From Guillardia theta CCMP2712 (lineage: Eukaryota > Protista > Cryptophyta): a stretch of 64,000 bases of DNA. The translations under genes and the position numbers were made by a program. The stretch is taken from NCBI RefSeq assembly GCF_000315625.1, contig NW_005434646.1, positions 1-64,000 of the forward strand, read 5' to 3'. The notes under the pieces were generated by a model, which worked only from the letters and a program-made list of their open reading frames with translations, was not told the DNA's origin and did not search any database. Numbering within the stretch: the first letter of the stretch is position 1; each line of letters starts with the position of its first letter. Shown here piece by piece: positions 1-31,298 of the stretch.

Positions 1-135
1 TGAGCTGCGCCTGTCCTGTCCCTTCCCCCCCCAGTCGCCCACCCCTTCCCTCCAAGACTATTAGCTGCGCCTGTCCTGTCCCTTCCCCCCCCAGTCGCCC
101 ACCTCTTCCCTCCATGACCATGAGCTGCGCCTGCC
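1..135. repeat. ~60-bp C-rich tandem repeat in the 3' UTR of copy A
   Basis: TGAGCTGCGCCTGTCCTGTCCCTTCCCCCCC.. recurs at 1, ~62 and partially at 121. Confidence 0.75.
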
Positions 136-231
136 TCCTTGATGCTAGGCTTGTTTTCCTTCCCTGCCGCCTGTGCTCCATAGGTGGCTTGCCCCTGTGC
201 CGCGCCTGCCCCCTCACCTGCCCCCATCGGA

Positions 232-3200
232 CTAGGTCGACTCGCTTCCCCTTCTTGCCGTCCATAGCATGTGTTGCACCTCCAGCAGTTGCTTGATTGC
301 TGCTGTCTTGATGCTTTCCCATTCCGTGTCTTCCACCCTTAGCATCCTGAAATTCTCATGCCATTCCCTTTCCATGATCGATCCTTTCACTCCTGCTATG
401 AATGTTGCTTGTTCAACTTCATGGTCAGGGAGCAGAGCTGTGATTGCTGCTCGTAGAGCGGTATATTTCTCTTCTTTTTCCTGAAATTTCTTCTTCAGGC
501 ATTCCAGGCTTGTTTGTTCGACTCCGTCATATTCCGATGTCCTTGCGAATTCAATGATGACGATGCGTTTGATGTTTGTAAAGTAGCAGCAACCGTCTGG
601 TATCCATTGTCCTTCTTGGTGCATTGATGTCCCCATCGCTTCCATCACGATGCGCATTGGAGTTTCCCACCATGTAGTGACCTGTAGCCTTTGTTTCCTC
701 CAACTCTGCTGCAGTTTTACCTTGATCTTCTTCATGACTTGATTGTGTGCTTGTTGGATCATTGCTTGAAACTGCCGACATGCCAGCTGAATATGCCCCC
801 AGGTTTCTTCTCGGTCTGGACAGTGGGGGCAGCATGATGAGTTAGTCTTCCCCCATTGAAAGAGCTTCTTCCTCGTCGGTGCTGAGAAGGTTATCGCTTG
901 AATTGCTGTTCGTGTGAATGAACCTTGACATAATCTGAACGCCTTCCCGAGTAGTTCTCTGCCCACATGTACTTCAAGCATGAATTTCTCCGTCAAGGTG
1001 AGGTCTCCCGCTCCAATCCTCGCAGTCATTGCCTGTTGTCGAATTATATAGTCCCACTTCTTCAGTCTATCCATTCCTGATGTAGGGTTGTCTTCTCCTG
1101 CGATGGTGAACTCCATTGCGCTGTCATAAATCGCTTTCTCCCATCCCGAGGCAAATGTTTGTTTTGCTTGCTTGGCCATCTCCTTTGCCTCTTGGATGTG
1201 CCGGTCGGATTCTTTTGCTAATTGAAGTCGGATCTTGATTCCTCTCCCCTCGAGTTTCTTCATGCAAGTGAGTAATCGATCATGTAGGTCCTCCAGCAGT
1301 TCATCTTCGTATCGCATGGTATCAATGCGTAATGTATTCGTGATGAAGCGGTGAAAGCGGGTGGACTGATACATGATTGTGACTTGATTTCCCCTCTTGA
1401 TTTGTATCCCTTCCTCGAGGATGTGTTGGAACAGTAAGCCAATTGCAATTGTATTCGCTCGAATGATGCTGCATTTCCCATTGATTTTCATCCCTCCTCC
1501 TGCTGCCGTCGCTTGTTGCTGGAGAACATACCCTATTCGCATGGTTCTATTTTTTCTGCTCTGTGTGACGTCTCCTTCAATAGCTGCTGTGAAATTCCTT
1601 CCGCCTTGGTGATTGCTGCGCGGCTGGATCTGACCCCTTCGTTGGATACACATCTCCTCATACGTTGGGAGGATGTTGTCATGAAGCTGAGCTCTGGGGT
1701 ATGTTGGGAATGTGTGCTTGACGAGTATCCATAGCTCCTCTAACGTTTTCATCAGGCAACGATTCCCTGTTCCCCAAAAGTTTGCTGCGTATGCTATCTG
1801 AGCGCCTTTCGGGATCCGGCTGATAATTTCGAAGCCTTCTGGTATCTCATCAATGTTATTCTTCCATCCTATCAGAATGACATGTATTGTGTTTTGCAGG
1901 ATGTGCTCGCGAAATCTCTTTTGTTTATCTATCCAAACCACCACTCGTTGCAGTTCCTTTGCTCTCTTGTTGCTCAGAGCCTGGGGATGTGTGTGTAGTG
2001 TCGGCCAGTTACGAAATGTGCTGATGTCACAATCTGTGATCTCTGCTAGGTGTTGTAAAAACTCGTATGCCAATGGTTGTGTTGTTTCTTGGCGAACCTC
2101 TGATACTACCTCTTCGAGTTGTTGCCACCATGCTGTAGCTTCTGTTTCGCCGTCGTCCAACATATTGACTATTTCCAGCAACAGATGGATACTTTGATTG
2201 CATTCTCTTCGGTTATTCCCGTCTTCTTCTTCCTTTGTTGCAGATGTGAAGGGAGCCGAGTCCAGCGACGCTTCCACCCATTCTATTGGTGGGTCCGAGG
2301 TTGTGTTTACTCCTGTGTGGGGCGGCTCAAAGATAGCGATGTCTCCATGAACTTTGAAAGGTATGCGCCCTGAAGTGTAGCAGAATCTTTCTCGCTGATT
2401 CTTGTCATCCCCATAGTAAGTAGCGTCATGTTGGAGGAGCTCCCTCAAAATCTCCCGGGTATGAGCCCTCCTATTTGTTTCCTCTCTCCCTTGGTCCGGT
2501 CTGGCTAGTTTCGTGGGTGGCAGGAGCTCGGGTGGGCTAGCCTCCCTTTTTCCTTTCCTTCTCTTGTTTGAGGGCTTCCCTTCCTCTCTGGCTGGCCTTC
2601 TTCTCTTCCCTGTTCCTGCCTGCTCTTGACCGAGTTTTGCCCAGATGACGTTCACTTGCAGATATCGTGCAAGGATTTCTTCTGCCTGTTCCCGTTGCTT
2701 TGGGAATGGCCAGAGTCGAATGGGTAGGTGCAGGGAGATGCCTTCGGTATCTGGAACAGGTAAGATACTTGTTAGGTAGTGATAGCCTACTTGGGGTAAT
2801 TTTCTCCATGCCTTAGCAAAGCTCTCCCAGCCTTGCCGAGCAGGAGATGTACGCAGGGATTGTTCTTCTGGGAGCAGGGAGTTTTCTTCTGAGAGCATCT
2901 TGTCTTCAATGTCGTGTAGCATAGCTATTGTCCCCGGTCTCATCTTGCTTTCAATCATTTCCCAGCTGATAGTTGTCTGCATTTTCTCCGCTACCCATAT
3001 TGCGAGTCGTTCTGGGCCCCTTATCTCTTCGATTTCGTTGAGTCTGCCCGATCTGATTTCTCGTTGTACTTGGCTTATTGTTTGACACCCCCATTGGTTG
3101 CACCATGATGTTAGTTTGTGTATCAGACTGCTTTTGATATCATCATCCACCCTGCATTTCTTATTCGTTTCTTTCTCTAGATACCGAATCGCCGCCCTTC

Positions 3201-6200
3201 CCAAGATGGGTGCTGGATGGGGGAGTTGGAGGCCTCCTCTGTCCCAAGGTAGGCGAAAAATCGCATTGCTTGTGCTCTTACTCAATCCCATAGCTCGTTT
3301 GAACGCTCTGGTCCAGAGGTTATCCAAGGTTTGTAAATCTTTCCACGTCCAGCTAACGAGTACCGCCGAGTATCGAAAGATATTCACGATACCTACTTTG
3401 ACTAGGTAGTATTTCTGGGCTGCAGAGTAGGCCGATGATTCAATCAGGTTTGTCAGTTCCCTGGTCTTTTCGAAGATATGCTCCTTCTCTCCCCACGTGA
3501 AGGGGCAGGTGTGCACCCTGTTGCCTCTTCCTCCTGATCGCCACAAGCTGATTCGAATCCCTAGATATTTGAACCATTTCGTCGGTGGTAGGTTCACAAA
3601 CTCCTTGTCGAAGAACTTGATGTTTTGCGTCCCCGGGATCTCCCTCTTGAGCCGATAATCAAAGCTGGTGATTTCAGATTTCTTCGTGTTCAGTTCTAAT
3701 CCGCTCCATCTACAGAATCGCTCTACCACTTGAACTAGTGTTTTCATTTCCCTCACTGAGTTGGCTATCAGTACAAGGTCATCTGCGAATGACAGGTTGT
3801 TGGGCTGCTGAGTTGCAATCTCGTCTTGTTGTTGATCGAGTTGTCTGGACAGGATGCTGAGCAGTAGATTTGTTTTGGGAGGACTTGCAGGACTGCCTTG
3901 AGGTAATCCCCTGAGAAGCGGGATGGCTGCCGTTTCGAACCTCTCTGTTTGAATCTGCAATGCTATCCCTTTGCTGCCGCTGATTACCACGTCTACATCA
4001 CGCTGATGGAAGCCATATACTTCCATGATTTTTGCGATGGATTCGACTGCCACGTTGTTAAAAAAGTTTGCAAAGTCGAGGTATAACAGGATGAGGGTGT
4101 GTTGATTGCTCTGAGCCTCCTCGATGATGTTGAGTAGACGATGGCCCTGCCGGATCGTCCCTCCCTCTGGTCTGAAACCTTCCTGGTTGTTCGTCAGCAG
4201 CTTATGTTTTTCAGCTGCTTTCGCGAGTCTGTGCGCTATGACCGCCTGGAAGATCCGCGTCACCGAGGAGAGGACGCATATAGGTCGTTGGTTCTCCAGG
4301 ACGTGACAGAGCTCATTTTTTGGTAAGAGCCTGACCCTTGCCAGCATATTCAACATCTTTTTGTCTCCTGTCAAAGCTTTGCTGATTACTTCCCCTATCT
4401 CCTCCTTTGCGCTATCAGGTAGAGCTTTCAGGATCTCATTTGAGATCAAATCCATGCCTGCTGCCTTGCGGTTGGATAATCTTTGGATCCAGACCTGAAT
4501 CTCTCCTGGCTCCAGCGGGTATGCTATTTCTATCTCCCTGGTCTGATATTGATTGATTTGATCTGGGGGGTCGAAGTCCGGTGGTTTGATGGAAGTGAAT
4601 AATTGACAGCTTTTGCAGAAGAAGAGGATCTTTGGTTCTTTGTTTTCCTGACGTCTGTCGTACAGCGGAATCATTCTTCCCTTTGTTTGACATTCAGCCC
4701 GTGCGCATGTTCCGTTCAATGTACAGCCGTTCACTGCAAAGAAGGTTGCCGTGTGGGTTTCATCTTCGAGGTCTCTTGCCAATCTCATGGGGATGAATTG
4801 CTCGATGTTTTTGTATCCTACTAAGCGCCACCCTCCTGGCTGCCCCCGGGTGATCAGTCCTCGGATGATGGGTACGATCGCGTGTGCAGGCGCCAGAGTT
4901 ATGTACATCTTTTGTGGTGCCTGGTTTCTCGCCCCGAGAGTCTCGACGTGTAGCATGGTTTGATGTCTTGCATTCCAAAAGGTTTTGCTTGATTCTTTGG
5001 AGCTGCTTTGTAAGAATGTTTCGATTAACGGGTTCAGTTCTTGAAGATATGCTGTCTCCGGCTGTTGCAGCGCTTGCTGGAGATCCTTCCATGACGTAAG
5101 TTCGATTGTATTTGGGTGGCACTTCTCTGGCAGTTGACTCAGCATTGGGGCTTTGGGCTTAAAGTCTGACTTCTTGCCCATCGCGTTTTGAGACTCTTTA
5201 CTGCCTATCGTCCCCAAGCGTCTTCTGCGTTCGTCGCATGTTTTCAGAAATATCTCTTGGTCCTGTGCTGCACAGATCTCTTTGAATTTGGTCATATTCT
5301 CTCTTATTTCTGCATGTAAGCTCGACTCCTTGTGTGCGCGATCAATAAAGTCTGGAATTTCTGAAGCGTTTCTTAAATCCTTGTGAAGTTGCTTGATTTG
5401 CGTTTCAGCTCCATCTGAATCTTAGATGCATGTCTTTTCCCGCTGGAGCCTCGTAGGGGGATTTCCTTGATGGGGAGGGCTGTTGTTATCAGTTCGAGAA
5501 TGTCCAAGTCTTGGTGTAGGGCTTTTGCCGCTGTTATCTTCTCATCCAGTGCTATTGCCCATTCTACACCTAATCTTCCTGATAACTTGTCCATCTCGAC
5601 CACCCTTTTCTTTCGTCGAGGAATTGCTTCTCGATCTCTCCTTTGCGGGAGAATTTCAATCTTTGGGATGGCTTGCTCACCTCAGCATCGAGCGAGCTCA
5701 CATTCACTACGAGTGCTCTGTGGTCGACGGCAGCTCCTATGATGCAGTCTTCTGCAGTCTGCGATATCAGGCTTACTGTGCGAGATGGATGATGGAAAGC
5801 AAAGATATGATCCAATTTCGCTTGGTGGTGACCCTGCTTGTACCATGTGGAGAAGGTGAAGTGTGTGCTGCTTTTGCACATCTTCTCGCAGGTGACTGTC
5901 TGGAATCGCCCAAGCTCATTTAAGACTTGCTCCATTTTCTCATCTGCACGGTGTACACTCGAATTGCTTCCGTATCCTATTCTCATGGGGATCTCTGGAT
6001 GTTGTCGAGATGCATTGAAGTCGCCTCCGATGATGATGAGCTTGATGTTTGGGTCTGGCTTGAGCATCTGGCTTAGCGCCTTCCACATGCTGTCTTGTTC
6101 CCCCTCCTCCGTCGCCACTGGCATATGAATGTTACACAGAAGTATGTTTTCTTTTTTTCGTGAGATCTGTAAAACTTGTATTTTTTGTCTGTGTGCCCCC

Positions 6201-7984
6201 TCCAATGCTGTACCATTTGGCGAGGAGGGGGGGCGCGGGAGAAGGTCAGCATGCGCCAGTATCACAAGGCGTAGATCACTCTTACCCTTTCTCCCTAACC
6301 CTGTACCATTGGTCATAAACATTCGGTAACATCCCCATTCTTTCTTGATCATCATTCGGAGATCTGTTTCCTTTTTCTTACCACGCCCCACCCTGACTTC
6401 CTGCAACATGACAATAGATGGATGATACTTCTCAATCAAATATGCCAGGATGTGTTTCAGCACGAATTGACTGCATCCATTGACATTTTGAGAGATGATG
6501 TTGCCTGGAGCGTTGTCCTTCTTGTGGGTTTCCACCCATGCTGAGTGCACTGACCTATCGGTGGTAGCCTCGTGTGCGTTGCTGCTTGCTGTTAGGATTT
6601 GCTCCTCCGCCTCCGATGCCCATTGAAGGTGAGACGCGTGCCTCTCTTGCATCTTCGTTGGGGCTGATGGCTCCTCCTCCCCCCTAGTCTCCTTGTCGTG
6701 CTTCGAGTTTGTCTCTGCGTGCATGTCTGGTGGGGGGGAAGGTGGCTGGAGTGGAGAGACGGGGCATGGGGCGGGAGGTGGTGGAGGGGGGTATGGCAGG
6801 ATGTCCCCCTGTGCTGACCTGTCTGGTATTTGCAGGGCCGCTCCATCTTTCCATCTCTCCTCTAGCCATGCATCTTCGGCTACCTGGGTCATCTGAAGCT
6901 CGCCTGCGCGTTTTTGGCCATTCTCTCGCCTTTCCATCTGGTTAGGTCTACGTTCCATGGTGAGCTTTGCTGCTTGCCATTCCTTGTAGCCTGTTTCTTG
7001 CGCGTGTTGTAACGCTCTGCAGATGCATTGGATCGTTTCTCGCATGTGAACTTGTTCTAGACCCCCTCCCCAGAGCCCATCCAGCAGCAGGTGCCTTGTT
7101 CTCACGAGCCATTGTTGGTGTGGCGGGACGCCTTGTTGCCTACCTATGTTGAAGATATCGTGTTGTTGCGTCTGCTTTCGTGTCTTTGCGATCAGTAGCA
7201 GATGCAGTAGTACAAAAATTCCGCAGTTGTAGCCGTCCGTTTGTTGCAGTCCCGTTGACACACATGCCCTCCATGCCTTGTCGTCTTGTTCTTGTTGGTC
7301 GCTAATTGCCTCGGTGATGATCGTCGCCACGAGTGATGCTAGGTCCATTCGCTGTGCGCCCCCCAATTGAAACTGTGCATCCCTTTGACTTCTGACTGTC
7401 CCCAGGTCTCTCTCCCCGGCCGTGTTGAGCGAGTCGACGATGTGTATTCTTTTTGTGTTGACATCTGCCACGATTAGGATCCAATGATTGCCGTTTTCTA
7501 CGCATGGGAATAATAATGGTTGATCTGCTCCGGCTAACAGTCGCTTTGCTCTCCTTGCCCTTCCCTCCTGATCTCTCAAACCCGCTACTATTCTCGGGAG
7601 AACAATGGTCCCTCTCTGCAGCCCAAATTGGTTTCTAGTTTGCTCGCTGGCATACCTCGTGCCTTGGAGCCATGCTATTTGAAATCTGTCTTCCGCTGGT
7701 TCTAAATTTCGGTTTACCTCAACGATTAAAGCCTCCATAACGTCCTCAGAGAGAAATCCATCTTCTCCTGAGTTGAGCAGCGCCGCTGCTCCGTACTCTC
7801 TATTGTTTTCCCGTAGACTCCAGGGGATCTCCCCTATCAAGTCGAATGTTTGTATTTTTCTGTTTTTTGGATTTTCTTTGTCATTCTTTTTCTCACCTTC
7901 TTGTCTCTTTCTGCTTGATTCCACCACGCCCTGGTGCCCACTGTCCCACCTGCCCTCAACTCCTCCTCCTCCTCCTGCTTCCAT
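232..7984 (-). CDS. ORF2 polyprotein (~2,580 aa when two 1-nt frameshifts at ~5680 and ~5398 are corrected): Ulp1/C48-like protease, APE, Cys4 insert, RT, inactive RNase H, CCHC, RLE
   Basis: Protease: NHWILIV..DSL..QQTDGYNCG. APE: QNVNG, LQE, GDFN, LDHI, VDH. RT: RPICVLS, QEGFR, GLPQGSPASP, FADD, FKYLG. Zinc finger: CPHCPDREETWGHIQLAC. RLE: AHN..IPDG..IIEF..KEEKY. Synonymous differences versus copy F identify the true frame across the joins. Confidence 0.9.
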
Positions 7985-10119
7985 TAGGCTTGCGCTGCTG
8001 GGAAGGAGTCAAGCGACATCTCTTCCGATTCTGCCGCCATGCTCCCAGCCGCGGGTACATCTTCCATTCGAGCGTCTTTCATCTGTAGCTCACTGCTCAA
8101 AACAAATTTCAATTCGTTTCTATCTCCCAGCATTCCTACGAGGGAGAGCGCCGTTGCCTCCAGGAATTTATTCAAAGCAATGAAGAGGAGATCAGTTTTC
8201 AATGGCTTCTCTTCATTTGGTGCGAAAGCGCTGTTCTTGCGCTTAGCTACCTTCCACGTATGTTTGCCTGCAATCACCCTGACTCGTTCACGCAGTCGCT
8301 TGCTCACGGCATTCTCTGCCGCGTTGGCACCCTTATCAGCCCACTCTTGTAGCGTGGGGAAGGATGCATTTCCTGGGCTCTCCGGAGCCATCTCTTGCAC
8401 CGCGTCATCAAGATGGAGTTGAAGCTGTCCTTGCTGTTGCAGCTCGCTCCTAGTTACGTCAGCAATAGTTTCCTTAAGTTCTTCGACGACCACGTCCGTT
8501 CCCGCATCTGGGAAGTTGGTTTCATTGATAATGGAACTGTTCCACACAGTTCCCTCTGCTCTGGTCCCCGTCGTTTGTGACCTGGCCTCAGGGTTAGACT
8601 GATCGCGAGTTGCCTGAGGCGACACTTTGAGGTTCAGACTGCTCGCTGTCGTTTGGATTTCAACTGTGCCTTGCCAGCAGAGGAGCTGTGTGGGGAATTC
8701 AGCCATCATCTTTCTTGCACTACTTTCACTGCGTAGCCGGAGAATGATACCAGACCCATCCCAGATCCCTGTTTCTGGATCGCATTGGAGGTGGATCCGT
8801 TGGAGATCTTTTTCCACCTGTGGATCAAAGCAAGCGACAGCCCTCCGAATGTTTCGGATGACTTTTGCTCTGCCCGTTTCGTCACTTGCACAGATTTTTT
8901 CGATCTCATTTCGGGAGAACTTCCCTGACGGCACAGGAGAGGAGATTTGTACCGAGTACAGCATCTCTGCTCCCGTTGCCATTGCCGTGCCCTCTTGTCG
9001 CACCGCATTCTTCATATTCTTGTGCAGCGCCGTTGCTTCCATCTGCACTGAGAACCATTTCAGTATTTTGTCATTCTCTGAGATCAGTCCCAAAGTGACT
9101 CCTGCTCGATCCTTTCCATGTCGATCGAATGCTTGAAGAACGATGTCCGCTGCTTCAAGGCTCGAGCACGTTGCGATCCAGTCGACCTCTCTGTTCTGGT
9201 TGACTGTTTCTATTCCTACCGCAGCGAACACCTTCTTTGGCGGTAGGTTCCTCTTGGGGGGGAGGTTCACTGTCATTCCCGCGTTTGGGATCAGATCAAT
9301 GATCGCTAATCCCTGCTTCAGGCATAGCTGCCTGTAGATCTCACATATGTCACCTGTGCTCGAATCGTTGAGCTTAAGGAGTTGGGCCACCTCAGCTAGG
9401 ATTCCAACTCTGCCCATGTTCTCCTTCTTTGGCCGCATCTTGAACGAGATCGGTGGGTTGGCTGCTGGGTTCACTGCTAGAATCCTCCTGCCTGCCACCT
9501 TGAAGGTACCTTCTCCTTTCCAGAGTTTCTCAGCCGCCTCATTGCGGACAAAGGTGATCACTGCTGGGATCTCCGCTGCCTGCACAAGGTCAGGCTTCAA
9601 GGGAGCCTTGAAGATCAGGCTCCTGCTGTCTTGCGTCTGATCGACGATCAAGCCTTGCTCTTCAAGCTTGAGGCATAAGTTTTCCACCTGTCTGGAAAAG
9701 TATGCAGGGATCCCAAGTACCTTCATGGTAATCGTCTGCACATTGGTGCCCTGATCATCATATGATCTGGCCTCCATCTGCCTTTGTCTGTCAGCTTGGA
9801 ACTCTGACAGGTACCACTGCCTGACATCGTCACCCCACTGCCTGAGCCCTTTCGGATTCTCCAGTGACGAGGGTTCAGCAAAGCTGCATGTCTGACTGAT
9901 GGCTTCGGCTAAGGCTTCCAAGGATATTTCTTTTGCTTTCAGAGCTTTGCTCGTCCTGCTTTTGGGGTTCTGCCTTGCGAATTCATCCAGTCTCCGCATC
10001 AGTTCGGCTGATGACGGCATCGTTGCAGCTTCCGTCTGCCTCTTGAGGTAGCTGGAGGTACGGTACTGCACGATCTCGTCAGGGTTCACAATAGATATTG
10101 GCCACATGTTTCGAAGCAT
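7984..10119 (-). CDS. ORF1 (711 aa), type A; putative RRM-like nucleic-acid-binding protein with acidic tail, no CCHC knuckle
   Basis: Open frame upstream of ORF2, homologous to ORFs at 19609-21756, 22111-24258, 24445-25551 and 31901-34026. RRM-like segments by eye (VLGIP..AVITFVRNEAAEKL..FKVAGRRI). Confidence 0.85.
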   Translation of the reverse strand: MLRNMWPISIVNPDEIVQYRTSSYLKRQTEAATMPSSAELMRRLDEFARQNPKSRTSKALKAKEISLEALAEAISQTCSFAEPSSLENPKGLRQWGDDVRQWYLSEFQADRQRQMEARSYDDQGTNVQTITMKVLGIPAYFSRQVENLCLKLEEQGLIVDQTQDSRSLIFKAPLKPDLVQAAEIPAVITFVRNEAAEKLWKGEGTFKVAGRRILAVNPAANPPISFKMRPKKENMGRVGILAEVAQLLKLNDSSTGDICEIYRQLCLKQGLAIIDLIPNAGMTVNLPPKRNLPPKKVFAAVGIETVNQNREVDWIATCSSLEAADIVLQAFDRHGKDRAGVTLGLISENDKILKWFSVQMEATALHKNMKNAVRQEGTAMATGAEMLYSVQISSPVPSGKFSRNEIEKICASDETGRAKVIRNIRRAVACFDPQVEKDLQRIHLQCDPETGIWDGSGIILRLRSESSARKMMAEFPTQLLCWQGTVEIQTTASSLNLKVSPQATRDQSNPEARSQTTGTRAEGTVWNSSIINETNFPDAGTDVVVEELKETIADVTRSELQQQGQLQLHLDDAVQEMAPESPGNASFPTLQEWADKGANAAENAVSKRLRERVRVIAGKHTWKVAKRKNSAFAPNEEKPLKTDLLFIALNKFLEATALSLVGMLGDRNELKFVLSSELQMKDARMEDVPAAGSMAAESEEMSLDSFPAAQA

Positions 10120-10193
10120 TCTCGATGGTTTCCCGAGCTTCCTGCGTTCCTGGCGACTCTTGCTCTACCACGCAGGGACCCCGCTGATCTGCA

Positions 10194-10478
10194 TGCCTCA
10201 GATAAAGGGATCCTGCCTCAGATAAAGGGATCCTGCCTCAGATAAAGGGATCCTGCCTCAGATAAAGGGATCCTGCCTCAGATAAAGGGATCCTGCCTCA
10301 GATAAAGGGATCCTGCCTCAGATAAAGGGATCCTGCCTCAGATAAAGGGATCCTGCCTCAGATAAAGGGATCCTGCCTCAGATAAAGGGATCCTGCCTCA
10401 GATAAAGGGATCCTGCCTCAGATAAAGGGATCCTGCCTCAGATAAAGGGATCCTGCCTCAGATAAAGGGATCCTGCCT
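10194..10478. repeat. 20-bp minisatellite (GATAAAGGGATCCTGCCTCA) x ~14, 5' end of copy A
   Basis: Perfect tandem copies read directly. Confidence 0.98.
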
Positions 10479-10660
10479 AAACCCTAAACCCTAAACCCTA
10501 AACCCTAAACCCTAAACCCTAAACCCTAAACCCTAAACCCTAAACCCTAAACCCTAAACCCTAAACCCTAAACCCTAAACCCTAAACCCTAAACCCTAAA
10601 CCCTAAACCCTAAACCCTAAACCCTAAACCCTAAACCCTAAACCCTAAACCCTAAACCCT
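10476..10660. repeat. Telomeric repeat (CCCTAAA)n, ~26 units
   Basis: Perfect heptamer array. Confidence 0.99.
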
Positions 10661-25847: not shown

Positions 25848-28800
25848 TTATTATTATTATTATTTGAGTTTATTAGACTCTTAGTCAAGAGTTTCATAGC
25901 TAAGAACTATTGCTCTTTGCTCATCTCTCGCCTAATGATCCGTCTAAAGGGGTTCCCAACCTTGGGAGGTTGGCCCATTCTCCTATAGGCCCCTTAGGCC
26001 TGGTTGCTTCCGTATGAGTTGTTTTCAGTAACGCTGTCCTCCGGGCCCGTCGCAAGTCCGATCCCGGTCCCCTTCCTTATTTTCGCTAAGTTCCGTTGTA
26101 CCTTCCTGCCCCTTCCCCCCCCAACACGCAGTCGCCCACTGTGGCAAGGCTGTACCTTCTCCTGCTGGCTAGCCCTTCTCTTCTTCCCTTCATGCAGCCC
26201 ATGACCATGCACCATGGGTGGCTTGCCCATGAGCCGCGCCTGCCCCCATCGGACTACATCGACTCTCTTACCCTTCTTGCCGTCCATAGCATGTGTTGCA
26301 CCTCCAGCAGTTGCTTGATTGCTGCTGTCTTGATGCCTTCCCATTCCGTGTCATCCACCCTTAGCCTCCTGAAATTCTCATGCCATTCCCTCTCCATGAT
26401 CGATCCTTTCACTCCTGCTATGAATGTTGCTTGTTCCACTTCATGGTCAGGTAGCAAAGCTGTGATTGCTGCTCGCAGAGGGGCATATTTCTCTTCCTTT
26501 TCCTGAAATTTCTTCTTCAGGCATTCCAGACTTGTTTGTTCGACTCCGTCATATTCCGATGTCCTTGCAAATTCGATGAGGACAATGCGTTTGATGCTTG
26601 CAAAGTAGCAGCAACCGTCTGGTATCCATTGCCCTTCTCGGTGCATTGAAGTCCCCATCGCTTCCATCACGATGCGTATTGGAGTGTCCCACCATGAATT
26701 GACCTGTACCCTTTGTTTCCTCCAGCTCTGCTGCAGTCTTACCTTGATCTTCTTCATGACTTCGTTGTGTGCTTTTTGGATCATATCTTGGAATTGCCTA
26801 CACGCAAGCTGAACATGTCCCCAGGTTTCTTCTCGGTCTGGACAGTGAGGACAACATGGTGAGTTAGTTTTCCCCCATTGAAAGAGCTTCTTCCTCGTCG
26901 GTGCTGAGAAGGTGATCGCTTGGATAGCTGTTCGCGTAACTGACCCTTCGCATAATCTGAACGCTCTCCCTAGTAAATCTCTTCCCACATGCATTTCGAG
27001 CATGAATTTCTCTGTCAAGGTGAGGTCTCCCGCTCGAATCCTTGCCACCATTGTCTGTTGTCTGATAATGTAGTCCCATTTCTTCAAGCGATCGAATCCT
27101 GATGTAGGATTTTCTTCTCCTGCAATGATGAATTCCATTGGGCTATCGTAGATTGCTTTCTCCCATCCCGAGGCAAATGCTTGTTTTCCTTGCTTGGCCA
27201 TTTCCTTTGCCTCTTGAATATGTCTCTGAGATTCTTTTGCTAGTTGGAGTCGGATCCTGATTCCCCTCCCTTCGAGTTTCTTCATGCAAGTGAGTAACCG
27301 ATCATGTAGGTCCTCCAGCAGTTCGTCTTCGTATCGCATGGTATCCATTTGCAACGTATTTGTCATAAAGCGGTGGAAACGTGTGGACTGGTACATTATT
27401 GTGACTTGATTTCCCCTTTTGATCTGTATTCCTTCCTCAAGGACATGTTGCAGAAGTAAGCCAATTCAATGCGATTGTGTTCGCTCGAATGATGCTGCAC
27501 TTCCCATTGATTTTCATCCCTCCTCCTGACGTCATCTCTTGTTGTTGGAGAACATATCCTATTCGCATGGATCTGTTTTTTCTGCCCTGCGTGATGTCTC
27601 CTTCAATAGCTGCTGTGAAATGCCTTCCGCCTTGATGATCGCTGCGCGGCTGGATCTGATCCCTTCGTCTGTTACACAGCTCCTCATACGTTGGGAGGAT
27701 GTTGTCATGAAGCTGGTCCCGCAAGTACGTTGGGAATGTGTGCCCAACTAGTATCCATAGCTCCTCTACAGTTTTCGTCAAGCACCTATTCCCTGTTTGC
27801 CAGAAGTTTGCTGCATAAGCTATTTGAGCGCCTTTCGGGACCCGGCTGATAATTTCGAAGCCTTCTGGTATCTCATCAATGTTATTCTTCCATCCTATCA
27901 GAATGACATGTATTGTATCCAGGATTTGTTCGCGAAATCTCTTTTGTTTGTCCATCCAAACCACCACTCTGTGCAGTTCCCTTGCTCTCTTTTTGCCCAG
28001 AGCCTGGGGATGTGTGTGTAGGGTAGGCCAGTTACGAAATGTACTGATGTCGCATTCTGTAATCTCTGCTAAATGTTGTAAAAACTCGTATGCCAATGGT
28101 TGTGTTGTTTCTTGGCGAACCTCTGATACTACCTCCTCGAGTTGTTGCCACCATGCTGTAGCTTCTGTTTCGCCGTCGTCCAATGCATTAACTATTTCCA
28201 GCAGCAGATGGATGCTTTGATTGCAGTCTCTTCGGTTATTACCGTCCTCTTCCCTTGTTGCAGATGCGAAGGGAGCCGAGTCCAGCGACGCTTCCAACCA
28301 TTCTATTGGTGGATCCACGGTCTTGCTTTCTTCAATTTGAGATCGCTCAAAGATGGCTATGTTTCCTTGAACTTTGAAAGGTATGTTGCTTGAAGTGTGG
28401 CTGAATCTTTCTTGCTGATTCCCTCCTTCATCATAACAGGTGGGGTCATGTTGGAGCCACCGCCTCAAAATTACCCGGGTGCAAGCCTTCGTATTCGTTT
28501 CCTCTCTCCCTTGGTCCGGTCTGGCTAGTTTCTTGTGTGGCTGAAGTTCATGTGGGCTAGCCTCCCTTTTTCCTTTCCTTCTCTTGTTTGGGGGCTTCCC
28601 CTCCTCCCTGGCTGGCCTTCTTCTCTTCCCTGTTCCTGCCTGCTCAAGTCCGAGTTTTGCCCAGATGAGATATTGTGCAAGGATTTCTTCTGCTTGTTCC
28701 CTTTGCTTTGGGAATGGCCAGAGTCGGATGGGCAGGTGCAGGGAGATGCCCTCGGTATCTGGGACGGGTAAGACACTTGTCATGGAGTGGAAGCCTACTT

Positions 28801-31298
28801 GGGGCAGTAGTCTCCATGCCTTTGCAAAACTCTCCCAGCCTTGCCGAGCAGGAGATGTAGGTAGGGAGTTTTCTCCGGACAGCAGGGAGTTTTCTTCTGA
28901 GAGCATCTTGTCCTCCAGGTCGTGTAAGATGGCTATTGTCCCCGGTTTCATCTTGCTTTCAATCATTTCCCAACTGATGGTGGTCTGCATTTTTTCCGCT
29001 ATCCAGATTGCGAGTCTTTCCGGTCCTCTTATCTCTTCGTTCTCTTTGAGTCTGCCCGATCTGATTTCTCGTTGTAGCTGGTTTATTGTTTGACACCCCC
29101 ATTGGTTGCACCATGATGTTAGTTTGTGGATCAGACTGCTTTTGATATCATCATCCACCCTGCATTTCTTATTTGTTTCTTTCTCTAGATACCGAATCGC
29201 CGCCCTTCCCAAGATGGGTGCTGGATGGGGGAGTTGGAGGCCTCCTCTGTCCCAAGGTAGGTGAAAGATAGCGTTGCTTGTACTCTTGCTCAATCCCATA
29301 GCTCTTTTGAATGCTCTGGTCCAGAGGGTATCTAAGGTTTGTAAGTCTGACCAAGACCAGCTCACCAGTACCGCCGAGTATCTAAAGATATTGACGATGC
29401 CTACCTTCACCAGGTAATATTTTTGGGCTGCAGAGTAAGCAGATGATTCAATCAGCTTTGTCAGTTCTTTTGTCTTCTCCAAGATGTGTTCTTTCTCTCC
29501 CCACGTGAAGGGGCAGGTGTGCGCCTTGTTGCCTCTTCCTCCTGGTCTCCACAAGCTGATCCGGATCCCTAGATATTTGAACCATTTTGTCGGTGGTAGG
29601 TTCACAAACTCCTTGTCGAAGAACTTAATGGTCTGTGTTCCTGGGATCTCCCTCTTTAGCCGATAATCAAAGCTGGTGATTTCAGATTTCTTCGTGTTCA
29701 GTTCTAATCCACTCCATCGACAGAATCGTTCTACCACTTGAACAAGCGTTTTCATCTCTCTCACTGAATGTGCTATCAGGACAAGGTCGTCTGCAAATGA
29801 CAGATTATTAGGGTGTTGAGTTGCAATCTCGTCTTGTTGTTGATCAAGTTGTCTGGACAAGATGCTGAGCAGAAGATTTGTTTTTGGCGGACTTGCGGGG
29901 CTGCCTTGGGGTAATCCTCTGAGAAGTGGGATGGCTGCTGTTTCGAACCTCTCTGTCTGAATTTGCAGCGCTATCCCTTGGCTACAACTGATTGCGACGT
30001 CTACATCACACTGGTGAAAGCCATATACTTCCATGATTTTTGCAATGGATTCGACTGCCACATTGTTAAAGAAGTTTGCAAAGTCGAGGTACAGCAGGAT
30101 GAGGTTGTGTTGATTACTCTGAGCCTCCTCGATGATGTTGAGTAGACGATGACCCTGCCTGATCGTTCCTCCCTGGTCGGGTGTTGATTGATTTGCTCTG
30201 GGGGTTCGAAGTCCGGTGGTTTGACGGAAGTCAGTGATTGACAGTTTTTGCAGAAGAAGAGGATTGATGCTTCTCCGTTTTTCTGGCTTTTGTCATACAG
30301 CGGAATCAGTCGTCCTTTTGTTTGACATTCAGCTCTTGCACAGGTTCCGTTCATGGTACATCCGTTGACTGCAAAGAAGGTTGCCGTGTGGGTTTCATCT
30401 TCTAGATCTCTTGCCAATCTCATGGGGAGAAGTTGCTCGATGTTTTTGTATCCTTCCAGGCGCCACCCTCCTGGCTGTGTGATCAGTCCTCGGATGATGG
30501 GTACGATTGCGTGTGCAGGCGCCAGAGTTATGAACAGCTTTTGTGTCAGTGTTGCCGGGTTCCTCGTCCCGAGAACCTCGACGTGCAGCATGGTTTGATG
30601 TCTTGCACTCCAAAAAGTTTTGCTTGCTTCTTTGGAGTTGCTCTGGAGGAATGTCTCGATTAACGGGTTCAGTTCTTGAAGATATGCTGTCTCCGGCTGT
30701 TGCAGCGCTGGCTGGAGATCGCTCCATGACGTAAGTTCGATTGTGTTTGGGTGGCACTTCTCTGGCAGTTGACTCAGCATTGGGGCTTTGGGCTTAAAGT
30801 CTGACTTCTTGCCCATTGCATTTTGAAACTCTTTACTCCCTATCGTGCCCAAGCGTCTTCTTCGTTCTTCGCATGCTTTCAGGAATATCTCTTGGTCTTG
30901 TGCTGCGCAGATCTCCTTGAATTTGGTCATATTCTCTCTTATTTCTGCATGTAAGCTCGACTCCTTGTGTGCGCGATCAATAAAGTCTGGAATTTCTGAA
31001 GCGTTTCTTAAATCCTTGAGAAGTTGCTTGATTTTGCGTTTCAGATCCATCTGGATCTTGGATGCATGTCTTTTCCCGCTGGAGCCTCGTAGAGGAATTT
31101 CCTTGATGGGGAGGGCTGTTGTTATCAATTCGAGAATGTCGCAATCTTGATGTAGAGCTTGTGCCGCTTTTATCTTCTCATCAAGTGCTATTGCCCATTC
31201 CACGCCTAGTCTTCCCGATAGCTTGTCCATCTCGACCACCCTTTTCTTTCGTCGAGGGGTTGCTTCTCGATCCCTCCTTTGCGGGTTAAGGGATCCTT
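25848..31298 (-). mobile_element. Copy F: 5'-truncated, decayed autonomous-type element with complete 3' end and (ATA)n tail
   Basis: Colinear with A 232-5650. ~373-bp deletion at ~30172 (CTCCCT microhomology) and 4-nt insertion at ~27465. Ends TAATAAACTCAA(ATA)n joined to GGGTTTA. Confidence 0.93.
26254..31285 (-). pseudogene. ORF2 remnant (RT, RNH-like, CCHC, RLE)
   Basis: ORF pieces 30001-31239, 27437-30061 and 26254-27396 match the A ORF2. Confidence 0.9.

Follow-up and report, generated by a model that had tools for sequence, protein, structure and literature searches.

Does the beginning of a contig of the cryptophyte Guillardia theta CCMP2712 hold a single retrotransposon equipped with two kinds of nuclease and a protease, and, if so, does it represent a kind of element not described before? 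A first-pass annotation of the window (the whole 64,000-nucleotide stretch of DNA analysed here) had placed behind a separate ORF1 an ORF2 with a Ulp1-like protease, an APE-type nuclease, a reverse transcriptase (RT), an RNase H (RNH) and a restriction-like endonuclease (RLE), and had taken this combination as a possible new clade. Pfam, fold and sister-copy comparisons show a non-LTR retrotransposon on the minus strand at 232-10478, in which a 5' minisatellite, ORF1, the overlap TAATG and ORF2 (C48, APE, RT, RNase H-like, CCHC, RLE) follow one another in the sense direction (Table 1). The motifs of the first-pass annotation were all found near the positions it gave, each backed by a profile or fold search. 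Positions 1-10478 (minus strand) very probably hold a nearly full-length copy, at present non-coding, of a non-LTR retrotransposon that is specific for telomere repeats and of the Dualen/RandI kind, in the C48-bearing version known from cryptophytes. The organism is borne out by an HSP90 ORF on contig C3 of the assembly, which is identical to XP_005841364.1 of G. theta CCMP2712.

Table 1. Features of the retrotransposon copy and its flank, in the sense direction (ORF2a and ORF2b, N- and C-terminal pieces of the broken ORF2)
Feature	Position	Strand	Basis or remark
Telomeric tract upstream of the element, (GGGTTTA)26 in the sense direction	10476..10660	-	Target DNA, outside the element
5' minisatellite, 14 perfect 20-bp units	10194..10478	-	
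5' UTR, ~75 nt, after the minisatellite	10120-10193	-	
ORF1, 711 aa	7984..10119	-	Without Pfam family
TAATG, one base common to ORF1 stop codon and ORF2 start codon	7982..7986	-	
Predicted C48/Ulp1-like cysteine protease, ORF2a aa ~131-290	7115..7594	-	Pfam, invariant residues, fold matches
APE-type (exo-endo-phosphatase) endonuclease, ORF2a aa ~491-760	5705..6514	-	Pfam; all catalytic motifs present
Broken ORF2 stretch	5296..5680	-	Two 1-bp deletions vs sister copies
Reverse transcriptase, ORF2b aa ~261-600, FADD 503-506	3496..4515	-	Pfam RVT_1
RNase H-like domain, ORF2b aa ~1226-1390	1126..1620	-	Alignment with relatives passing Pfam RNase_H
CCHC zinc knuckle and restriction-like PD-(D/E)xK endonuclease (RLE)	256..834	-	Invariant residues, profile match
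3' UTR, first part; holds 60-bp unit x 2.2	1..231	-	Remainder lost at contig start

Domains of the two open reading frames

The element is repetitive in this genome, either end of ORF2 matching no fewer than 70 fragments, and open ORF2s of 2,482-2,573 aa with the identical domain order are found in at least two diverged families of the genome and on a public JGI contig. Near the N terminus of ORF2, the annotated Ulp1-like protease is borne out by profile, residues and predicted fold. Pfam Peptidase_C48 scores 27.8 bits (cut-off 20.7; E 2.7e-6) on ORF2a residues 157-274 (nt 7163-7516), and the triad H167, D184 and C254 is invariant across families, as is the oxyanion residue Q248. An AF2 model of moderate quality (pLDDT 63, pTM 0.70) retrieved SENP1/2, Ulp1 and XopD in Foldseek at probability 1.0; all 22 matches at E<=0.001 are Ulp1-type proteins of clan CE (SENP1/2/3/5, Ulp1, XopD, SnCE1) and, one MBP-fusion chain excepted, they have probability 1.0 and a TM by target of 0.47-0.63. 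A sister copy has the gene model GUITHDRAFT_117917, in which PF02902 is found too. Searches with ORF2a as a single sequence were less informative, giving weak matches to XopD and L1-EN in the PDB (E >0.1) and, in a word-index protein search, one Guillardia gene model and nothing else. The domain thus belongs to peptidase family C48 (Ulp1/SENP, clan CE) and is a predicted protease. Three Gly-Gly sites are common to families A and B (aa 7, 841 and 1575 of P0001, an intact ORF2 of the window's own family) and were considered as sites of self-processing; they do not argue for it, because they are too few and too unspecific.

The RT was rightly annotated, with a Pfam RVT_1 match on ORF2b at E 5.9e-29, and is followed by a thumb-like region up to about aa 755 of ORF2b. 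Its best solved relatives are R2 proteins (1.2e-22; the RNA-directed DNA polymerase chain 8c8j reaches 7.8e-13). As for the annotated RNase H, a homologous domain is indeed present, but the four catalytic carboxylates are gone in the Guillardia lineage, being replaced by E1240, N1281, Q1310 and K1371. Pfam RNase_H was undetected in the Guillardia copies (window ORFs and intact sister ORF2s), and a profile of the domain matches RNase H1 (2qk9) at 1.6e-10. By its aligned residues, the domain is an RNase H homologue that is predicted to be catalytically degenerate and that has lost its active site yet stays strongly conserved. An atlas feature search of the 470 aa between the RT thumb and this domain, and of the 260 aa before the RT, gave nothing usable.

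The two nucleases lie on either side of the RT in the same ORF2, APE N-terminal and CCHC+RLE C-terminal, as identified by Pfam and profile in the window and in intact ORF2s. The APE, including the NIHMP motif singled out in the first-pass annotation, was correctly recognised: Pfam Exo_endo_phos matches ORF2a residues 498-735 (nt 5780-6493) with 26.3 bits vs a cut-off of 24.5, intact sister ORFs score 31.7-33.2 bits, and the motifs QNVNG, LQEV, NIHMP, GDFNA, KLDH and VDHRAL are readable. The annotated CCHC and RLE likewise hold, since 26 relatives show little or no variation at their residues (C1489, C1492, H1501 and C1506; P1566-D1567, E1582, K1607 and Y1611), and a profile of the module matches the solved R2 proteins 9nl3 and 9dou at E ~1e-23 over ~210 residues. 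With ORF2b as a single sequence, phmmer against the PDB found the RT alone, and the RLE required the profile. The first-pass annotation had allowed that profiles might fail to support C48 or RLE folds; both folds are supported.

Every domain is under purifying selection (dN/dS 0.06-0.27, with 0 for the RT in the family-B pair). The values are 0.24 for C48; 0.22 (family A) and 0.08 (family B) for APE; 0.06-0.07 for RT; 0.08-0.10 for the RNase H-like domain, with 0.27 for the pair from family B; 0.11-0.27 for CCHC-RLE; and 0.15 for ORF1. The protease, the RT and both nucleases retain what are, by sequence, their catalytic residues. One could still suppose that a single nuclease is in use and that the other is a relic being lost, as expected if Dualen is transitional; the RNase H-like domain shows that catalysis can be lost within this very protein, and the environmental relative P0031 has D for the E of the APE 'QE' motif. 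However, all catalytic residues of both nucleases are kept across families that are 36-53% identical, and both domains have dN/dS values of 0.08-0.27, so that a relic nuclease seems unlikely. Conservation by itself is no proof of catalysis, given that the constraint on the dead RNase H-like domain is just as strong.

The separate ORF1 of the first-pass annotation is present upstream of ORF2 and is kept in at least two families, its 711-aa product having a counterpart in family B with 35% identity across 698 aa. A Pfam search of ORF1 from the window and from sister copies gave no family, and an atlas feature search gave sub-threshold RRM_PARP14 leads only. ORF1 may contain RRM-like beta-alpha-beta-beta-alpha-beta modules at aa ~123-226 (nt 9442-9753) and aa ~385-492 (nt 8644-8967). 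The support for these folds is weak (Z <8): the mean pLDDT of the AF2 model is low, at 50, and its two better segments resemble RRM domains with Z scores of 5.7-7.2. The TAATG overlap between the two frames also occurs in two other copies (L013 and L002), and the family B junction consists of TAA, three codons and an in-frame ATG.

Kinship with cryptophyte Dualen

The proposal of an undescribed mosaic does not stand, because cryptophyte Dualen elements with C48, APE, RT, RNH, CCHC and RLE are already known (PMC5029228). Lescot et al. (2016) reported for Dualen-1_GCr the set SET, C48 peptidase, APE, RT, RNase H, CCHC and RLE, and called it unique to cryptophyte Dualen; the C48-bearing configuration is absent from the Chlamydomonas elements (PMC5029228). 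The recognised both-nuclease group is Dualen (PMC4640811), and the dual endonucleases, rather than ORF count, are its main characteristic (PMC5029228). [quoted passage not shown]

A new LINE clade bridging the RLE and APE types was nevertheless worth weighing, since the mosaic itself is real, several traits set the lineage apart from Dualen-1_GCr (an ORF1 of its own, no SET, an RNase H without active site, insertion into telomere repeats), and a word-based search of 5.8 billion proteins with the RT region returned two close full-length relatives only. However, the domain list and the both-nuclease group were on record in the two papers just cited, and a full HMMER search readily gave environmental proteins of the same order (P0031, P0032 and P0036). 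A new clade is therefore quite improbable. Architecture and likeness to the environmental relatives point to the Dualen group, within which the Guillardia element is a variant of the known cryptophyte kind, and its domain mosaic is not new.

What distinguishes the lineage is a separate ORF1, no SET, an RNase H-like domain without catalytic carboxylates and insertion into TTTAGGG in one phase. [quoted passage not shown] No Pfam match to SET was found in the window ORFs or in intact sister ORF1s and ORF2s, while the environmental relative P0031 has SET, and BLASTP found no similarity between ORF1 and the N-terminal 1,300 aa of this relative. Dualen/RandI elements were described in the first-pass annotation as having a single ORF, and the Guillardia element differs from this by its two. 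In Dualen/RandI of Chlamydomonas reinhardtii (Kojima and Fujiwara 2005, as cited in PMC4640811 and PMC5029228), APE and RLE likewise occur in a single RT protein, where RNase H lies between RT and RLE. The tails of RandI, (ATT)n and (CTATTT)n (PMC3747384), are short repeats and not poly(A), as are those of the Guillardia elements, (AAT)n and (CTA)n.

The broken ORF2 and the telomere-repeat target

The single ORF2 of the first-pass annotation is intact in sister copies, and one element is present, but in the window its frame is split by two 1-bp deletions. Compared with the sister copies, one base is missing at ~5677-5679 and one at ~5396, which brings a stop codon at 5570-5572 into frame and leaves ORF2a (7984-5570), a short middle piece and ORF2b (5295-232). 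As assembled, this copy is unable to make the ORF2 protein. The frameshifts may be an assembly error in this copy. Contigs from public runs have one additional base at each of the two sites; they deviate from the window sequence at many further positions and thus come from sister copies.

It is evident from the sister copies that the APE-bearing and RT-bearing halves are parts of one element. Intact ORF2s of family B have APE and RT in one frame (2,502 aa in L010, 2,504 aa in L009 and 2,482 aa in L012), and the window's own family has the 2,573-aa ORF2 P0001 on the public JGI contig L013, where ORF1 lies upstream with TAATG between them and where the contig starts with two units of a 20-mer related to the window's minisatellite. 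Uninterrupted ORFs cross the APE-RT junction in L005, L009, L010, L012 and L013. The first-pass annotation had also allowed for the two halves coming from different elements, and these intact ORF2s span both. Nesting or fusion of an APE/protease element with an RLE-type element, by insertion or misassembly, can be dismissed. In its favour, the break falls exactly between APE and RT, and similarity to the window's second copy (26208-31285) ends at the position corresponding to nt 5649, beyond which that copy runs into unrelated ORF1-type sequence. Against it, the break consists of two single-base deletions in a region (5150-5750) that is otherwise 92-96% identical in the four sister copies shown (L002, L001, L005 and L007), the second copy is most simply a 5'-truncated insertion, and junction-spanning ORFs in two families just 36% identical in the N-terminal part already refute it.

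The window copy lacks its 3' end because the contig start truncates the 3' UTR, and the target was read from other copies. Of the 29 family-A 3' ends recovered from the genome, a strict test placed 18 in one phase as (AAT)n-A|GGGTTTAGGG, and a further 3-4 show the same junction with a short or degenerate tract (21-22/29 in total). Complete copies, whose (AAT)n ends are joined at one phase to GGGTTTA repeats, point to the contig ends, and in family B the junction is (CTA)n followed by GGGTTTA. All RLE-domain matches less than 12 kb from a contig start (27/27) are on the minus strand, and the 3' ends thus face outward. Seven of the 29 family-A ends lie in non-telomeric DNA, which suggests that the specificity is strong and not absolute, or that copies were relocated later. 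The lineage is therefore a telomere-repeat-specific retrotransposon (TTTAGGG), inserted in a fixed phase in most copies. A literature search found no report of a tie between Dualen and telomere repeats. In public runs whose RNA type is a guess, splice joints are antisense to the element.

Comparison with other LINEs, and a possible mechanism

Like the Guillardia element, NeSL and Utopia-1_TSP have an N-terminal Ulp1/C48 domain, a C-terminal CCHC and RLE, and target-specific insertion into repeated sequence; unlike it, they lack APE and RNase H, target spliced-leader or U2 snRNA genes and live in nematodes (PMC4640811). RLE is the sole endonuclease in NeSL, whereas APE is present and conserved in the Guillardia element. 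The closest solved relatives of the Guillardia RT and CCHC + RLE module are R2 proteins (9nl3, 9dou, 9nl2 and 8gh6), their matches to ORF2 being restricted to these two parts. R2 has N-terminal zinc-finger/Myb DNA-binding domains. R2 is a single ORF aimed at 28S rDNA, whereas the Guillardia element has two ORFs and is aimed at the telomere repeat. TRAS1 and SART1 of Bombyx mori resemble it in a fixed telomere-repeat position, two ORFs and arrays at chromosome ends, but they belong to the R1 clade, have APE as their single nuclease without RLE or protease, and target TTAGG.

Target-primed reverse transcription would copy the element RNA into the chromosome end. Either APE or RLE would nick the C-rich strand of the telomere repeat and prime the cDNA, and the other nuclease would cut the second strand. 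The ORF1 protein may coat the RNA. The host's own RNase H, or else strand displacement, could stand in for the missing activity, and the inactive domain may be a structural or nucleic-acid-holding module. The C48 protease might, speculatively, either cut the ORF2 polyprotein or strip SUMO or ubiquitin-like modifiers from host proteins that block integration. With little confidence, we propose a fuller picture in which the Guillardia elements would be a distinct, telomere-dedicated Dualen branch: APE and RLE would make one strand break each in TTTAGGG, the inactive RNase H-like domain would be re-used as a nucleic-acid clamp, C48 would act on SUMO-modified host proteins of the chromosome end and not on its own polyprotein, and, together with ORF1-only partner elements, these elements would make up much of the alga's chromosome ends under the control of spliced antisense RNA.

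To our knowledge, Dualen elements are the only LINEs with both nuclease types, and they have been used in arguing how RLE gave way to APE in LINE evolution. The Guillardia lineage offers a tractable case for the role of each nuclease: its copies are many, its target is a 7-bp repeat, its junction is precise, and selection acts on both nucleases. That the RNase H fold has been retained without its catalysis is a small, testable point on domain re-use in LINE proteins. Telomere-specific LINEs have separate origins in insects, fungi, Giardia and green algae, and the dual-nuclease element of a cryptophyte adds one more.

Anatomy of the element and its intact relatives

On the minus strand of the window, three long ORFs follow one another head to tail, namely ORF1 and the two pieces of a broken ORF2 (ORF2a and ORF2b); the DNA upstream of the telomere repeats that precede them is unique. 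Base 1 of the window is also base 1 of its contig (C28), where the 3′ UTR of the studied element is cut short. The assembly is that of Guillardia theta CCMP2712, since an intronless HSP90 ORF on its contig C3 matches XP_005841364.1 of this strain without a difference. The complete 3′ end that this copy lacks is supplied by a second copy of the same family (family A), and consists of a UTR of ~400 nt, a short (AAT)n tail and GGGTTTA repeats, followed by the minisatellite of the next element. This second copy breaks off at the position corresponding to nt 5649, shortly downstream of the APE domain, carries an internal gap (4166-4534) and has an unrelated ORF1-type sequence as its upstream neighbour. 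In the 3′ UTR of the studied copy (window 1-133) a 60-bp unit is repeated 2.2 times with a match of 93%; in sister copies the unit is present once or twice, which makes UTR length variable.

Features of the studied element and of the second family-A copy in the window
Feature	Position	Strand	Description
ORF1	10119-7984	-	711 aa
ORF2a	7984-5570	-	804 aa
ORF2b	5295-232	-	1,687 aa
Minisatellite upstream of ORF1	10194-10478	-	20-bp unit, 14 perfect copies
Telomere repeats upstream of minisatellite	10476-10660	-	n = 26, GGGTTTA on sense strand
Second copy, family A	26208-31285	-	5′-truncated, 88-90% identical to studied copy

The studied copy changes reading frame twice between APE and RT, being one base short at ~5677-5679 and one at ~5396 relative to sister copies (92-96% identical there). 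Contigs from public runs have the extra base at both sites; since they also show other differences from the window, these contigs derive from sister copies, and the two missing bases may be true deletions or assembly errors. Either end of ORF2 has at least 70 matching fragments in the genome. Uninterrupted ORF2s of 2,502, 2,504 and 2,482 aa were found in a diverged family (family B), whose identity to the window element is 36% N-terminally and 53% C-terminally, and by Pfam these carry APE and RT within one protein. Moreover, a 10,731-nt contig (L013; JGI 3300016466, Ga0186760_100687), 87% identical to the window element, is a complete family-A element with an open ORF1, the TAATG junction and an open ORF2 of 2,573 aa (P0001). 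Two 20-bp minisatellite units open the contig; at its other end, (AAT)n is joined by two and a half telomere repeats, after which a further minisatellite just begins. The contig represents either genomic DNA or the product of read-through transcription. The APE- and RT-bearing halves thus belong to one element and do not derive from different ones, as intact ORF2s span both.

Protease, nucleases and an RNase H-like domain under selection

By Pfam, the 804-aa piece contains Peptidase_C48 (residues 157-274) and Exo_endo_phos (residues 498-735), both over the curated cut-off, and the 1,687-aa piece contains RVT_1 (residues 325-582). C48 residues H167, D184, Q248 and C254 do not vary in an alignment of the two Guillardia families, the Guillardia gene model GUITHDRAFT_117917 (in which PF02902 is present) and one environmental relative. 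Residues 40-330 were modelled with AlphaFold2 at moderate quality (pLDDT 63, pTM 0.70), and the model gave 22 Foldseek matches at E<=0.001, all 22 to Ulp1-type CE-clan proteases with probability 1.0 throughout, among them SENP1, SENP2, SENP3, SENP5, Ulp1, XopD and SnCE1. For APE, the motifs QNVNG, LQEV, NIHMP, GDFNA, KLDH and VDHRAL are legible in the window, NIHMP reading just as first noticed; the core LQ(E/D)V, N-x-H/Y, GD(F/M)NA and LD(H/Y/A) is preserved across every aligned copy, in alignment ranges that exclude QNVNG and VDHRAL in some rows.

At the other end of ORF2, a HMMER search with the last 1,100 residues against 1.84 billion representatives returned 236 matches. Among 26 aligned C-terminal segments, C1489, C1492, H1501, C1506, P1566, D1567, K1607 and Y1611 are invariant and E1582 nearly so. 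The profile of this alignment matches the CCHC and RLE parts of solved R2 retrotransposon proteins (E 8e-24), and the PD, D/E and K..KY motifs line up between them. The C48 and RLE calls of the first-pass annotation are therefore both supported by profiles.

Pfam did not detect RNase H in any Guillardia copy searched. Pfam RNase_H is passed by seven relatives recovered with the window's own sequence as query (P0023, P0037, P0121, P0022, P0032, P0036 and P0099), and alignment with these shows clearly that residues 1226-1390 of the window's ORF2b form this domain; the profile of the RNase H alignment also matches human RNase H1 (1.6e-10). In place of the catalytic carboxylates D, E, D and D, the window's family has E1240, N1281, Q1310 and K1371, and family B has H, H, K and A.

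dN/dS by domain (Nei-Gojobori), from the window pieces against the sister copies L013 and L005 and from the family-B pair L010-L012
Domain	dN/dS
C48	0.24
APE	0.22 and 0.08
RT	0.06-0.07; 0 for L010-L012
Thumb	0.08-0.11
Stretch in middle of ORF2 without domain assignment	0.21-0.23
RNase H-like	0.08-0.10; 0.27 for L010-L012
CCHC-RLE	0.11-0.27
ORF1	0.15

The low dN/dS indicates that both nucleases and the protease, whose catalytic residues are intact, are maintained by selection; the loosest part is the linker between C48 and APE (0.50-0.73). Conservation alone is no proof of catalysis, as is demonstrated by the RNase H-like domain, which is among the most constrained parts of the protein. Two long stretches of ORF2b are conserved (dN/dS ~0.2) and have no assigned fold: aa 756-1225 (nt 1621-3030), with a basic NLS-like run, and aa 1-260 (nt 4516-5295), with a Cys-rich motif (C-x5-C-x4-C ... 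C-x2-C).

The telomere-repeat target

To survey the target, we located the terminal 29 nt of the family-A 3′ UTR throughout the genome and examined the sequence downstream. Under a strict test, 18 of 29 family-A 3′ ends show the junction (AAT)n-A/GGGTTTAGGG; three to four more have the same junction with a tract that is short, degenerate or truncated by the contig end. The phase of the telomere-repeat junction is always identical, and family B joins (CTA)n to the telomere repeat in the same phase. The other seven ends have non-telomeric DNA downstream (L021, L025, L026, L035, L036, L037 and L041, on contigs C54, C97 twice, C12, C79, C84 and C29 of the G000 assembly), the two on C97 representing a duplication because their flank is identical. 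Such ends may reflect rare insertion outside the target, rearrangement at a later time, or short non-autonomous elements with the same 3′ end. Where an RLE-domain match lies no more than 12 kb from a contig start, it is on the minus strand in every case (27/27); the elements therefore point outward, and their sense strand is contiguous with the G-rich strand of the telomere.

In the window region 4800-8200 (plus strand), contigs of three public runs presumed to be RNA, from three studies, omit five segments of 47-315 nt: 5095-5143, 6626-6834, 6958-7022, 7087-7403 and, in one run, 8053-8130. Read on the plus strand, which is antisense to the element, every one of these segments begins with GT and ends with AG; a DNA-type run has none of the five joints. 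The plus strand there has no long ORF. These observations suggest antisense transcription that proceeds inward from the side of the chromosome end and yields a spliced RNA.

Comparison with Dualen, ORF1 and a possible mechanism

LINE/Dualen elements are reported from cryptophyte genomes, and are expanded in all of these but that of G. theta (PMC12747079). In Dualen-1_GCr, from the cryptophyte Geminigera cryophila, SET, C48 peptidase, APE, RT, RNase H, CCHC and RLE sit in one protein of 5,287 aa, a configuration termed unique to cryptophyte Dualen (PMC5029228). Two environmental proteins repeat the domain order of the window element, P0031 with SET, C48, APE, RT and a C-terminal RLE match, and P0032 with C48, APE, RT, RNase H and a zinc knuckle. 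The domain mosaic, which had been raised as a possible new clade, is therefore already published. Unlike Dualen-1_GCr, the window element lacks SET and has a separate ORF1; in the literature searched, we found no description of these two features, nor of the inactive RNase H-like domain or the telomere-repeat target. A distant RT relative, the 3,451-aa ENA metagenome protein P0004, is an additional LINE-like protein combining a ubiquitin-family protease (ubiquitin carboxyl-terminal hydrolase PF00443, upstream of RT) with RLE, its C-terminus being a classical CCHC + RPD...E...K..KY module.

No Pfam family was found for ORF1 in the window or sister copies, but ORF1 shows conservation between the families, with 35% identity across 698 aa. 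Its AlphaFold2 model (residues 101-520) is poor overall (pLDDT 50), with two better segments of beta-alpha-beta-beta-alpha-beta order that mostly match RRM domains at Z 5.7-7.2, under the safe level; an RNA-binding protein is the likeliest reading, if a tentative one.

In insertion, the C-rich strand would be nicked and the RNA, perhaps bound by the ORF1 protein, copied by target-primed reverse transcription, after which the second nuclease might cut the other strand; host RNase H or strand displacement may replace the lost RNase H activity. The C48 protease could cleave the polyprotein in cis or target SUMO-like modifiers in trans, and the three Gly-Gly sites common to both families are too little basis for arguing what it cuts.

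In family A, the ORF1 stop overlaps the ORF2 start (TAATG). In family B (L010:7715-7760 on contig C64 of G000, and likewise L012 and L009), three codons separate the TAA stop of ORF1 from the in-frame ATG of ORF2. Reinitiation at ORF2 is plausible in both families, and in family B stop-codon read-through could also yield an ORF1-ORF2 fusion. If read-through does occur there, the fusion would place the C48 protease shortly past the junction.
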